A stretch of DNA of 63,909 bases from Octopus bimaculoides (lineage: Eukaryota). Below the pieces are notes generated by a model. It had not been told where the DNA came from, searched no databases, and was given only the letters and a program-made list of their open reading frames with translations. Numbering within the stretch: position 1 is the first letter of the stretch; every line of letters starts with the position of its first letter. Location: NCBI RefSeq assembly GCF_001194135.2, contig NC_068984.1:51570405-51634313 (forward strand). Direction: 5' to 3'. Made by a program: the position numbers and the translations under genes. This document shows positions 34,701-43,700 of this stretch, piece after piece.

Positions 34701-37700
34701 GTTCGGGGTTCAGTCCCACTGTGAGATACCTTGGCCAAGTGTCTTCTATTATATCCACGGGCAGACAATTGAAAGAAGCCCGTCGTATATATGCATATAT
34801 GTATGTGTATGTACGTGTTTGTGCCTGTGTTTGTCCTCCCACTACCGGTTGACAACTGGTGCTGATGTGTTTACGTCCCCGTAACCTAGCGGTTCGATAA
34901 AGAGACCGATTGAATAAATACAAGACTTAAAAAAGTTAAGTACTGAGGTCGATACATTCAAGTAAAATCCTTCAAGATGGTGCATGGCCGCAGTCAAATG
35001 ATTGAAACAAATAGAATAAATTATTATATTATATACAGGGGTTTTCGTTACGCTAGCGCCTGCCATACAAGCACCAAGAATTTGACCCCTTTGAAAGTGC
35101 GATAGTTCTGTCATTTTAATGAATTTTAATTACCTTTTTCTGATTATATCTGAAAAGAAACAGCAATTTTAGCAAAACATATTAAGCAACACTAATAATA
35201 AATCAAAAAACATAAAAATAAACAAACTTTTGACGGTTTTATAGATATTTCAAAATTATGGTGCTATGATGCTAGGTGTTTCCATTATTTTGTCCAACGC
35301 CTGTATATATATATATCAAGAACTTACCTTTAAAACTGCTTAGATATTCATCATTACTTTGGTGCTCAATATCGATTATGTTCCTTTTAAACCAAATACA
35401 ATGCTGGTCAGGTTGGTCTGTTCCAAGAATTCCTTGCATAATTTCTGCTTCGGTGACTGTTTTATTGTTGTTAATCCGGAAAAATAATTCAAAGAAATTA
35501 AAGTAAATTTCATTATGCAAAAATTAAAGAAATTGCTATCGACTACTCTCACCTGCTCAATGTCATGAAACCAGTGCTACACACTAGTCGATAAATTTAC
35601 CTGACATTAGGAAACGCCTGGCTTCATCTTCTTCAAGGAGACGTTTAGCTGCTGCACAGATAATTTTTCTTAGTTGGCTGCTTTCTTTATTCCACTGTTG
35701 TGTGGCCTCTTGCCTTTCTTCTTCGTTGTGGCTGAGAAACAATGGAAGAACATATCCAATTGGTTGAAGAATGTAGGAGGGAGCCAACGAATTAAGGTCT
35801 TCTTTGTACCAACTGCAAAGAATAAGTTGCATATGTTGAGAATAATAATGGAACAAATTGATTTCTTTTGGGTAGAGACACAAGTACTTTCAGAGGATAA
35901 AGAAACCAGTTGAAACGAATTCTGTGAGGTATCGATATCTATTTATTAACCCTGAAAGAATAAAAGGCAAAATTCACCATGGCAGGTCCGTAGCTAGGAC
36001 GTAGAGGTCAGATAAGATAGAATATTGTACTTATAAAGTACTTTGTCAGATTAGATAGTATTTTGTATTCAGTACATTGTCAGATTAAATAGTATGTTGT
36101 ACTTAGTTCGAAGCCTCTACCGTTTCTACTGGCTTCAGCTTTTAGACTGTGGCCATGTTGAGGCTTGCCTTGAAGGGTTTAGTACAACAGATCGACCGTG
36201 CTACTTGTTTTTAAAATCTGATGCTTATTCTATCAGTCTCACGACACACACCTTCATTTACTCACTTTCTCTCTCTCTCTCTCTCTCTCTCTCTCTCTCT
36301 CTCTCTCTCTCTCTCTCTCTCTCTCTCTCTCTCTCTCTCTCTCTCATTTCTCTTTGTCTCTCTCTTTCTCTCTCACACACACACGTGCACGCACGCACGC
36401 ACACACATGTCGAAAGAAAAGAGCACTTAATGCTGAATCATTAAATCAATGTTTTAATGATTAGACAGAAGTCCAATAGAATAGCTCTCAGAAACAGACT
36501 ACGTATAAATTCGTTCTTCCCAACTCCTGAAGCCGCTTTCAGATATGATCCATCCCATTCTTATAAATATGATAATTCTGTCAAATTGGTGTGCTAAACA
36601 CAAATTGTCGTTTCTGTAGAGCTTTAAAATTTTCAAATGAAACAAATGGCATGTGCTGCTCAGGCGGTCAGGTAAGATTGCCAGCACTACCAGCTCCTTC
36701 TCAACCTCTTGTGGATCTTCTAGAAGGCACTTCCATCCAGTCAAAGGATTTTCTGAACAATATCAGACAATACAACTCTGCATTTCAAATGACATCGTTT
36801 ACTGCATCTAAGATAGTTAAACATGAATTTACGCCGACGTAAAAGTTCAAGGGCAAGTCTATCACCTCATTGGTTCCGTTACCCACAAATGAACAGCCAC
36901 AGTTCCTCCAAATTTATTTTATGAATGATGTAGGACAACAAATCCGAAGGAGGTTTCAATATTTCAGATGATGGGTCGTGTTAGAAGACACAGCGCCGAC
37001 TGCTTCAAAACAGAGTATATCTACTGAAAGCTTTTCTATGCGTTCAAAAATCACAAAACCCCCACCTCCAACTTTCCATGACAGTTTAAGGCCTGAAATA
37101 CTCCAAACGGACGCATAGCATGTTGCTTAGTCGAATTAGCCCATCATTTACTTCAAAAATGTTTTCTTGTCAATGCTGCACTTTCTCATATCACTTGTTT
37201 CGGCATAACTAAACTATACTATTTTAATCCCGAGCAACGCCAGGTATCTCTACTTGTGTGTGTATGTATGTATGTATGTATGTATGTGCGTGTGTGAATG
37301 TATGTGTGCATGAATTTATGTAAGTTTAAGACTTCAATTTTATAAATGATAATCTTAATAATAATTTGTTGTAGACATTTAGGCATTCAATGTATAAAAA
37401 TTTCATTAAGTAACTAAAATTATTTAAAACATATACCGATGTATGAGTTCTTTGTCTTCGGCGGAGTTAATGTCTGATGAAAACCTTTCAAAGATAGCTT
37501 TGTTGATGATTCTGGGGCAAGGTCGATAACCATATTTGTGGGAGAGGAATGTCTGAAGTGAAGGAATAAGTAATGTTTCAAATAAAAGCAAAATAAAAAT
37601 CCTTTCAAGTTAATTTTTTTTATTCATGATCACAAGTACTATTTGCACTTATAATGATAACATATCATTTTGTTTAGCAAATCCAGTTCTCGGCAAATTG

Positions 37701-40700: not shown

Positions 40701-43700
40701 ATGTGTGTGCGTGCGCATATTAGGTGCCGTTAGTGTGTACTGTAAGAGCGGATATCAGTGTGTGTGTGTTCATGCGCGCGCGCGCGTGTATATGCGCGTG
40801 TGAGTTATGTGACTATGCAAGTACGTGAGTGAATATATATGTCAGTGAGTTTGGTGTGAAATCGTTGTATTATTTAATGCAAGTACAATGTAAACAGCGT
40901 TAGATGTGTGTGCGCGTTTATAATTTAGTGTATGTTTTGAAGGGGAAAATAGTTTTTATATATGAGTGAATATATGTCTAGGGTGACTACTTTACGCGCG
41001 CGTGTAAATTAGTGTGTAAATTTGTGTATGAGCGTATGTAATTCGAATATATGTTTGTGTCAATTGATAGTACAAGTGTATGTGCGTGAGCGTAGTGTGT
41101 TTTGTGCGTGTCTGTGTGAATCAGAGTTAATTAAAGTTACGTGTGTGTGTGCAATTGAAAATGATGCGTTTTTATATTGCGCATTTGAGTATGCGAGTGT
41201 GTTTAGATCAAGAAATAGCCAAGGTGGTATACTGGTGTGTTTAATGAGGTGTTTTATATGTGCGTGTAAATCAAATAGGCTTCTTCAAAGAGTGCGTGTG
41301 TATGTGCAATAGAAAAGGATGGGTTTATGGATTTGTAAATATAAGCACTATTATACATGTATGTGTGTGTGTCTATGTGTCTAAGTGCCTATGTGCGTGT
41401 GTGTGTGTGTGTGTGTGTGTGTGTGTGTGTGTGTGNNNNNNNNNNNNNNNNNNNNNNNNNNNNNNNNNNNNNNNNNNNNNNNNNNNNNNNNNNNNNNNNN
41501 NNNNNNNNNNNNNNNNNNNNNNNNNNNNNNNNNNNNNNNNNNNNNNNNNNNNNNNNNNNNNNNNNNNNNNNNNNNNNNNNNNNNNNNNNNNNNNNNNNNN
41601 NNNNNNNNNNNNNNNNNNNNNNNNNNNNNNNNNNNNNNNNNNNNNNNNNNNNNNNNNNNNNNNNNNNNNNNNNNNNNNNNNNNNNNNNNNNNNNNNNNNN
41701 NNNNNNNNNNNNNNNNNNNNNNNNNNNNNNNNNNNNNNNNNNNNNNNNNNNNNNNNNNNNNNNNNNNNNNNNNNNNNNNNNNNNNNNNNNNNNNNNNNNN
41801 NNNNNNNNNNNNNNNNNNNNNNNNNNNNNNNTGTTTAGCTGTTGTTTTAATATTGTGTAAAAAGGAAACAAACATATAAAAAGAAAATTTATACATAAAC
41901 TTGATCGGTTCGCGTTTTATCCACTGCCGGGTAGTGTGTTTAATTTGTTCACTGAACACCGCCGCGAATTCCTCCTTGTTTTTCAAAAATCCCCTCAAAT
42001 GACAAAATAAGGAGGTGAAAATGTGCCTATTTTTCAAATCCTAGTAGCAACATTGAAGTTAGAAGCAGGATAATAATATAATTTATCACATTCAAGAATA
42101 TAAACACGTTTTAAGCACAACACACACGAATTCAAAAAGAAACACTACCTTTCACCCGCACTGTCATTCACGCAGTGCTCTCTCTTCCTACTGCGAAGCT
42201 TCCTATCTCGGGCTTGTGAGCATGCGCACAACAGCCAAACACCGCATCACTGGAGCTGTGAAGCGCACAGTTCTATACAAGGACTTTTGTATTTTTTTCA
42301 TAAACTAGAGGATGGCTACTGACATTAAACTTAAGGGTTACATAATGTACAAGTATAAAGAAAGAATTAAAGAAAAAAGGATTCATTATATTGAATGTTA
42401 TCGATAATATCGAGTGGAAATAGAGGGTGCTGCAGTTCCACGGTTCCTATACACGAGCCGCCACTGCTCAACACCATCAATAACTAAGGAAAAGCAACAA
42501 CTCAAACATTTAAAATACTAAAATTATTATTTTGCCAATCAAAAATGTTATCATTTACCTGTGAATGTACTGCTGGTAAATATTCGTACGATTTTGGCTT
42601 CACTTAGGCATTCAACTTGCATATTGCCCATTAGTAAATCATGGACTGCTTTCTCCTCTCTACTAACCTCCGTCTTTAGAGAAGTATTACTCACATGCAT
42701 TAAATTATTTGAACCTTTAAGCTGTTGAATTTTCTTGTAGAAATTTATTTTAGCGCTGATATTTCTCTCACCAGATCGCAGGTTTCCATTCTCTTTTAGA
42801 TTTACACCAGAATTAGATTCAGACGATGAATTTGTTTGGTCTATTTCGGCAAATGTTATTTCATTTGTCATGTCTACTGATTCTGATTGAACTGTTTCTT
42901 CCGATTTCTTGTTATTGTAGCTATTTTCTGGACTTTTAATATCCTGTTCTTTTTTCTCATTGCAAGAATTTTTCAAATCAGTGTTCTCTTTCTGGATGTT
43001 TTCATTGTTATCGTTTTGTATATTTTGATCCGTTGCAAAAGTTACAACTGCATCAATGTGGTTTTCAGTATATTCCTGTGGAGGTCTTTCTTGAATAGTT
43101 TCTTTAGAATGAACTATTGATTTCGATGTCATTAAGCTGTCACTTGTTTGGAGAAGAATTCAAAAGAAAAAAAAATGCAATCAATATCGTTGGTTTCATT
43201 AGTAGCAATATCATATTACGCAAACTGGTTGAAATGTTAGTCACTAAATCTCTCCACTTACTCTTCAACACCGCTCACAAATTAGAAGTGTGTCTATGGG
43301 TTCTAAAATTACTCTAATCATGCCAGCTTATTCATAGATTATGTTAGAAGGCAAATTTTCATCGAATTCAATAATCCACTCGTAAACTCTATGACCACTC
43401 CAATGCCGACATTACTAACCTTCTCAGAAACAAACTTCTTTGATTTCCTTTGTCAACAACCCTTTTACCTGCACTATAATTTGGTGGAACTAACTTGGGC
43501 ATTCTTGGATACGTCCATATTTTTCTCAATATTGACAGATGTCTATCAACTTTTGAGAACTTAACGACACTAAGACATACTTACATTACACTTCTGTTCA
43601 TCCCTCACGTATAAAATAATTCTCTCCTTTTCATGATTCTTCATCTTTTCATGAACCGCACCACGAGCTATTTAAAAGTTCAGCACCACGCTGATATCTA

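Follow-up and report, generated by a model that had tools for sequence, protein, structure and literature searches.

The TIR-like domain of an NWD1/NWD2-family STAND gene in Octopus bimaculoides and the position of its catalytic-equivalent glutamate

Does a cephalopod gene that joins a TIR-like domain to a NACHT module and WD40 repeats encode an enzyme, and if so, which of its glutamates would act in catalysis? The question is raised by a 63,909-nucleotide (nt) stretch of Octopus bimaculoides DNA (contig NC_068984.1, positions 51,570,405 to 51,634,313), which we analyzed as a whole and refer to as the window. From its letters, the original prediction had placed at 37437–43142 an effector-NACHT-WD40 receptor whose DUF4062/TIR-like effector would carry a catalytic glutamate in the motif LCMKEL, by analogy with the TIR 'WCxxEL' helix. 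We find that a gene with many exons occupies the minus strand here, from about 44250 to 3000 or below, and that it almost certainly encodes an animal NWD1/NWD2-family STAND protein. Its domains follow in the order N-terminus, TIR-like domain (DUF4062, for which NIR and TeTIR are other names; residues ~213–540), NACHT, NWD1-type winged helix, helical region, and WD40 propellers. The predicted catalytic glutamate is E406, in the motif SVTEAEI, and not E278 in LCMKEL; it lies outside the flagged interval, two exons further on.

Homology to TEP1 and the catalytic-equivalent glutamate

The TIR-like NADase nature of DUF4062 has already been published in four bioRxiv preprints from 2026, making the general idea of the original prediction right but no longer new. 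Osinski et al. (10.64898/2026.05.01.722283) establish DUF4062 as a TIR-like NADase, both in the bacterial Swarozyc defence system, where the catalytic residue of KpSwz is E97, and in human TEP1, where it is E1008, place it beside NACHT in NWD1, NWD2, TEP1, and NPHP3, and speculate that WD40 sensing leads to NACHT oligomerization and activation. Le Mouellic et al. (10.64898/2026.09.04.749371) give the domain the new name NIR, report it in Avs2, Vulcan, Vesta, and thousands of eukaryotic NLR-like proteins, and describe inserted helices that hide the homology of the eukaryotic domains. Hornebeck et al. (10.64898/2026.09.21.753143) name it TeTIR and solved the structure of TEP1 E1008A at 1.3 Å, in which E1008 superposes on SARM1 E642. 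The fourth preprint concerns the Evangelion DUF4062 defence family. Two of the four propose activation via NACHT-driven oligomerization, and the oligomerization trigger assumed in the original prediction thus stands as a published proposal for the family.

The octopus domain is homologous to the TEP1 domain over its whole length. A profile built from it and its relatives matched the TEP1 chain 11gz_A in the PDB (E = 1.7e-19), and a global alignment of hidden Markov models (HMM-HMM, made with hhalign) to the TEP1 domain gave E = 5.9e-25 with a probability of 99.7% over 182 columns, collinear from βA to βE. This global alignment sets E406 opposite residue 115 of the chain. TEP1 numbering equals the 11gz_A chain index plus 893, an offset that fits all seven residues checked (R908, R914, R942, R954, C959, R976, and F902), and residue 115 is therefore E1008, the second glutamate of SVTEMEV. 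The octopus SVTEAEI also aligns with SVTEMEV in pairwise BLAST (E = 0.004), with agreement from a segment hhalign. Because the two motifs align, E406 (codon 35445–35443, in exon 35456–35328) is taken as the catalytic-equivalent residue. The αC–βD segment alone, whether queried as one sequence or as a profile of 11, did not find TEP1 among the PDB sequences, and the local hhalign of our first alignment to TEP1 ended at βC; linking αC to TEP1 required pairwise BLAST and hhalign and then the full-domain global HMM-HMM alignment.

Structure prediction agrees with this placement. A first AlphaFold2 (AF2) model (237 aa, 20 sequences) reached a predicted local distance difference test score (pLDDT) of 80, and a second (279 aa, 21 more diverse sequences) reached a pLDDT of 91.4 and a predicted template modelling score of 0.87, with βA–βE alternating with helices. 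E406 sits on αC in these models, after βC and a helical insert of ~95 residues.

Searches with Pfam confirm the effector-NACHT-WD40 architecture that had been proposed, each of the four families scoring above its cut-off: DUF4062 (PF13271, 26.4–27.3 bits against 24.7, matching model positions 1–67 of 82, βA to βC), NACHT (PF05729, 33.2 against 26.7), HTH_NWD1 after NACHT (PF25469, 46 against 27), and WD40 (PF00400, 29 against 27, with further partial matches to β-propeller families). No match to Pfam TIR or TIR_2 was found at E ≤ 1, DUF4062 and NPHP3 being the sole matches for the N-terminal domain, and neither PADLOC (PADLOC-2023) nor NCBIfam held a model that matched it. The claim of a TIR-like effector holds nonetheless, through homology to the solved TEP1 domain and the NADase assignment of DUF4062 in the preprints.

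The active-site residues of TEP1 were located in the octopus protein and their conservation was counted in the top 150 out of 14,110 representative clusters:

TEP1 F902, octopus F218: conserved in 149/150
TEP1 S905, octopus S221
TEP1 R908, octopus T224: poorly conserved position
TEP1 R914, octopus R230: conserved in 150/150
TEP1 R942, octopus R258: conserved in 150/150
TEP1 W943, octopus W259
TEP1 C959, octopus C275: conserved in 149/150
TEP1 R976, octopus K298: Arg in 124/150, Lys in 26/150
TEP1 E1008, octopus E406: conserved in 149/150

In TEP1, the substitutions C959A, F902A, R914A, R942A, and R976A leave little or no activity (Hornebeck et al., 10.64898/2026.09.21.753143), while R908A causes only a partial defect. 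Molecular dynamics (MD) and AlphaFold3 (AF3) models place E1008, C959, F902, R914, R942, and R976 in contact with NAD; C959 is essential, with a role that Hornebeck et al. leave mechanistically unexplained. Among these activity-required residues, the phenylalanine, two arginines, cysteine, and glutamate are identical in octopus, and R976 is replaced by lysine, a conservative change typical of animal NWD-type proteins.

Enzymatic activity, scaffolding, and the αB glutamate

The explanation that we consider probable overall is an NWD1/NWD2-family STAND protein with a TIR-like domain, in which E406 would be the catalytic residue of an oligomerization-triggered NADase. By analogy with TEP1, bacterial Avs2 and Swarozyc, and Apaf-1-like STAND proteins, the WD40 region would hold the protein off until a ligand permitted NACHT-driven oligomerization. 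Oligomerization would then open the RWG/BB loop, and E406, aided by C275, would hydrolyze NAD(P)+ to ADP-ribose(-phosphate) and nicotinamide, in a protein whose N-terminus is probably lipid-anchored and disordered. That the NWD clade as a whole carries a latent NADase switched on by NACHT oligomerization is a tentative proposal drawn from these analogies, and we place it slightly below an even call.

Several observations weigh against an active enzyme. The preprints report no NADase activity in vitro for full-length human NWD1, NWD2, and NPHP3, and among five eukaryotic domains expressed in E. coli, TEP1 was the sole toxic one, those of human NWD2, fly Nwd1, mouse TTC41, and human NPHP3 being non-toxic. 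Isolated human and mouse NWD2 domains have low but detectable NADase activity and cause only marginal cell death. The functions known for the family are neuronal (the NWD1-PAICS purinosome, and QUI-1 in the chemosensory neurons of C. elegans), and no enzymatic role is demonstrated among them. In the octopus protein itself, K298 stands where TEP1 needs R976 (R976A is inactive), and residue 312 (37494–37496, minus strand) is an isoleucine where 145/150 representatives have glutamate. The fold searches point the same way at face value: Foldseek against the PDB gave no match at E ≤ 0.001 for either AF2 model, with a library that runs to 2026-04-08 and predates the TEP1 and KpSwz entries, and its top matches were generic Rossmann-like folds, the best TIR being RPS4 (4c6r_A) at rank 19 with E = 0.43. 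Because the library predates these structures, we regard the Foldseek outcome as uninformative rather than negative. Of the fold check proposed in the original prediction, the five-strand alternating model was thus obtained but a significant TIR match was not, and the TIR-likeness of the domain derives from homology with the TEP1 domain of known structure and not from fold search.

The position of I312 marks the start of the first helix in the βC–αC insert, which TEP1 lacks. All 11 close relatives or molluscs read over this region have glutamate there, within the motif P..I...E[FL].

The main rival explanation is that the TIR-like domain of the NWD1/NWD2 clade is a non-enzymatic scaffold, for instance one that recruits PAICS after NACHT oligomerization, with NAD+ cleavage vestigial or absent. 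It would account for the inactivity of full-length human NWD1 and NWD2, the restriction of toxicity to TEP1, the low activity and marginal killing by isolated NWD2 domains, and the lysine in place of R976 in animal NWD-type proteins; in addition, a yeast two-hybrid assay shows Paics bound by the N-terminal region of mouse Nwd1, in which the DUF4062 motif lies. Yet the catalytic glutamate, the αB cysteine, the ribose-contacting phenylalanine, and the arginines are nearly invariant in animal and prokaryote-type sequences, which argues for selection on catalysis. NPHP3, a truly inactive member, has lost the catalytic glutamate, whereas the octopus gene keeps it, and the activity of NWD2, although low, is above zero. 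We consider such a scaffold role less likely than the oligomerization-triggered NADase.

The proposal that E278 is itself catalytic, as the equivalent of the TIR 'WCxxEL' glutamate, is very improbable. The conservation check suggested for this residue came out in its favor, since E278 is invariant (150/150 representatives, and 26/26 sequences in our first alignment), and it lies one helical turn after C275, the counterpart of the essential TEP1 C959. However, E278 aligns with TEP1 E962 and not with E1008, and E962 is not listed among the NAD contacts in the MD and AF3 models. The 'WCxxEL' helix of canonical TIR domains follows βC. In both AF2 models, LCMKEL instead lies on αB, between the RWG/BB loop and βC (model helix 64–78; βC 84–88), and because it precedes βC, its parallel with 'WCxxEL' is a coincidence of letters. 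The helix is relevant after all, through its cysteine. E962 is not mentioned by Hornebeck et al. (10.64898/2026.09.21.753143), and neither the residue nor a mutation of it appears in the available passages of the other 2026 preprints. Because E278 is invariant and sits one turn after C275/C959, it is a candidate for some other function; that it is a real functional residue of the domain class, as an acid/base partner of C275 or as a latch for the gating RWG-loop arginine, is a conjecture that we rate as improbable.

Gene structure and assembly gaps

The exon model, guided by homologues, comprises 17 exons that yield 486 + 590 residues. The peptides quoted in the original prediction all occur on the minus strand, in exons bounded by canonical splice sites, but the interval assigned to them proved too narrow: 37437–43142 covers three of at least 17 coding exons, all on the minus strand and all three with GT/AG boundaries and matching phases, and the start codon lies upstream of it, in exon 44250–44162. 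The features of the locus are as follows:

44162–44250, minus strand: first coding exon, starting MGCSASTITKK...; ATG and GT donor read directly, tblastn 100% to database protein P0196
42559–43142, minus strand: N-terminal extension and βA exon; ~180 aa of low complexity, then KIVRIFTSSTFT; terminal peptide ...EAKIVRIFTSSTFT / ...KIVRIFTSSTFT; carries F218 and S221
41436–41831, no strand: assembly gap in the intron between exons 43142–42559 and 40173–39971, preceded by (TG)n
39971–40173, minus strand: exon of αA, βB, RWG loop, αB, and the start of βC, from homologue and TEP1 alignments and AF2; peptide DTQHERNYL...FQVVDMRWG...TTELCMKELKLCQKLSTGPNFV, also given as ...VVDMRWG...TTELCMKELKLC...GPNFV; αA ERN with R230, RWG loop with R258/W259, αB LCMKEL with C275 and E278 (codon 40015–40013)
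39339–39615, no strand: assembly gap in the intron between exons 40173–39971 and 37552–37437, flanked by (TA)n
37437–37552, minus strand: rest of βC and start of the CC-loop helical insert; peptide TFLSHKYGYRPCPRIINKAIFERF...ELIH, opening TFLSHKYGYRP; contains K298 and I312
35601–35812, minus strand: helical insert between βC and αC, WYKEDLN...RRFLMS; pLDDT ~95
35328–35456, minus strand: αC and βD exon, SVTEAEIMQG and HCIWFKRNI; E406 codon 35445–35443
33031–33156, minus strand: αD and βE exon, ...IMTYDVEWRPK; phase 1 at end
30282–30291, no strand: 10-N gap that cuts the 5' end of exon 30279–30148; ~27 codons absent from the assembly
30148–30279, minus strand: pre-NACHT linker exon, LIEKAIY...GRNDLLM
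28720–28862, minus strand: NACHT exon with Walker A, GSSGCGKTS at 28811–28785
26839–26941, minus strand: NACHT exon, RFLGTTLASSD...
24739–24954, minus strand: NACHT exon with Walker B, LVLILDSLD at 24885–24865
23697–23367, 21684–21532, 20182–20033, 18478–18262, 16959–16803, and 15344–15177, minus strand: six exons encoding the end of NACHT, the NWD1-type winged helix, the helical domain, and the first WD40 repeat
12793–12212, 11738–11460, 11025–10723, ~7620–7354, 4859–4389, and 3363–2956, minus strand: divergent WD40/β-propeller exons, partly resolved

The Walker A and B motifs named in the original prediction are thus present, though far outside the interval given for them. Both N gaps inside that interval are intronic and adjoin microsatellites, (TG)n and (TA)n. 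Against 25 homologues and against human TEP1, the junctions SSTFT/DTQHERN and GPNFV/TFLSHKYGY show zero indels, and the coding sequence is therefore continuous and in frame across these gaps. A different gap does affect the domain. The exon start at 30279 (LIEKAIY...) directly adjoins the 10-N run at 30282–30291, and the sequence upstream of the run is non-coding. In full-length homologues, 27 residues separate the counterpart of ...DVEWRPK (where the exon ends, at 33031) from LIEKAIY (for example P0215 328–354, ...GIDPNGVSSHQQYINKLCEDFESDMKE). About 27 residues from the C-terminal portion of the TIR-like domain are lost to this gap, and the word 'intact' in the original prediction is borne out only in part.

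The WD region (~15344 to 2956) contains three further gaps, including 8966–9853 and 5863–6811. Its candidate coding segments sum to only ~580 aa, against the ~600 aa of WD repeats first estimated; only some have homologue support, which extends down to 3031, and the C-terminus may be off the window. Because residues 1555–1609 of P0213 match 3174–3031, the final ~150 residues are encoded either below 3031 or outside the window. Homologues shorter than 800 aa failed to resolve the WD exons by tblastn; full-length representatives helped partly.

An alternative acceptor at 35444, which would remove VTEA, was rejected, homologues retaining S-x-T-E-x-E. P0196 is a 100% identical copy of the same gene and uses the upstream start exon 44250–44162. 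This public gene model includes two exons that look repeat-derived, at 34813–34932 and 33366–33464 on the minus strand (peptide ...RTARLRGRKHISTSCQ...). No homologue has an equivalent of these exons, and they stand in for the true junction from 35328 to 33156; a similar copy lies at 48470–48604 on the plus strand. An intron of the gene holds a nested foldback inverted repeat at 38418–38894 that resembles a miniature inverted-repeat transposable element or foldback element, with outer arms of 88 nt at 91% complementarity (38418–38505 and 38807–38894) and inner arms of 76 nt at 87% (38520–38595 and 38734–38809). Five open reading frames upstream of the gene, transposon-like by eye, were dropped for want of a Pfam match.

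That the locus represents a pseudogene in decay or a chimera of the assembly, as the ~27 codons missing between exons 33156–33031 and 30279–30148, the divergent, gap-interrupted WD region, and the repeat-derived exons of the database model might suggest, is extremely improbable, given that the 1076 modelled codons have no in-frame stop, 15/15 modelled junctions have GT/AG boundaries and compatible phases, an N gap falls where the piece is missing, and identity to full-length homologues is 44–48% on both sides of that gap with all functional motifs kept.

Place of the gene within the DUF4062 family

The octopus gene is a further member of a known family. Its named nearest relatives come from molluscs, arthropods, and cnidarians, with NWD2-like or NWD1 as the nearest database names; the assignment is to the NWD1/NWD2 family as a whole. 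It shares with NWD1 and NWD2 the order of DUF4062/TeTIR, NACHT, NWD1-type winged helix (PF25469), and WD40. With human NWD2 it further shares an extended domain of equal size (NWD2 residues 35/40–363/364) that has a large helical insert before αC, and the GxKYGY motif with its lysine. It differs from both in its low-complexity N-terminal extension of ~210 residues, starting MGCSAS, and in the isoleucine at 312.

Likeness to the human TEP1 TeTIR/NIR domain (PDB 11gz) extends from βA SSTF through ER(N/D), the RWG loop, CLxE on αB, and (R/K)YGY on βC to the catalytic helix S-V-T-E-x-E and βD. TEP1 differs in its TROVE/VWA N-terminus, in a much shorter βC–αC loop that lacks the 95-residue insert, and in its arginines at 976 and 908, where octopus has lysine and threonine. 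TEP1 is also a robust NADase, whereas members of the NWD2 clade have been weak or inactive in assays so far.

The bacterial DUF4062/NIR effectors (KpSwz, Avs2, Vulcan, Vesta, and Evangelion) belong to the same effector family, with a catalytic glutamate (KpSwz E97, PsAvs2 E108) and NAD+ depletion described as following sensor-driven assembly. The eukaryote-type inserts are missing from the short bacterial domains, the similarity of KpSwz to the octopus sequence is confined to βA/αA (E = 0.022), and three prokaryotic TeTIR homologues that were assayed were inactive. The logic of effector, STAND module, and repeats is common to SARM1, plant TNL TIRs, and fungal HET-E/NWD NLRs; the effectors at the N-terminus of the fungal HET-E/NWD2 proteins are unrelated. 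Canonical TIR NADases likewise carry their catalytic glutamate after βC, as with SARM1 E642, but the DUF4062 domain adds an essential αB cysteine and the RWG loop, and its phosphate-binding residues differ.

Among the 150 best representatives, 116 look prokaryote-type (the P0210–P0359 set; P0192–P0198, P0204, and P0205 were also noted), a call based on a DLRWG motif and the lack of an N-terminal extension, together with named Planctomycetota/Bryobacteraceae matches. The full-length prokaryote-type examples examined have the TIR-like core, helical insert, NACHT, and NWD1-type winged helix in common with the animal proteins at ~30–35% identity. This resemblance hints that the whole module may have been transferred between bacteria and animals.

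The protein starts MGCSAS, and the pattern MG[CS]xx[S] likewise opens the proteins of 13/32 animal-type relatives (MGCGPS, MGSGSSK, MGCANS, and others). Such a start is a classic N-myristoylation signal, often accompanied by a palmitoylation cysteine. The conserved MG(C/S)xxS start suggests that the NWD2-like clade may be membrane-anchored, as a putative lipid-anchored STAND NADase. A literature search for NWD1 and myristoylation returned no relevant paper.

Because both the gene family and its TIR-like NADase character are on record in the literature, the locus contributes little more than one well-conserved member of the mollusc type. What changes is where to look. The targets for mutagenesis become E406, with C275 second, in place of E278, and the N gaps of the flagged interval are harmless, whereas the 10-N gap removes part of the domain. 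Among the relatives examined, Ile312 is seen only in the octopus protein. The invariant αB glutamate, the lysine for arginine at a phosphate-binding position, and the acylation-type N-terminus could bear on the weak catalysis of NWD2-like proteins and on their location.

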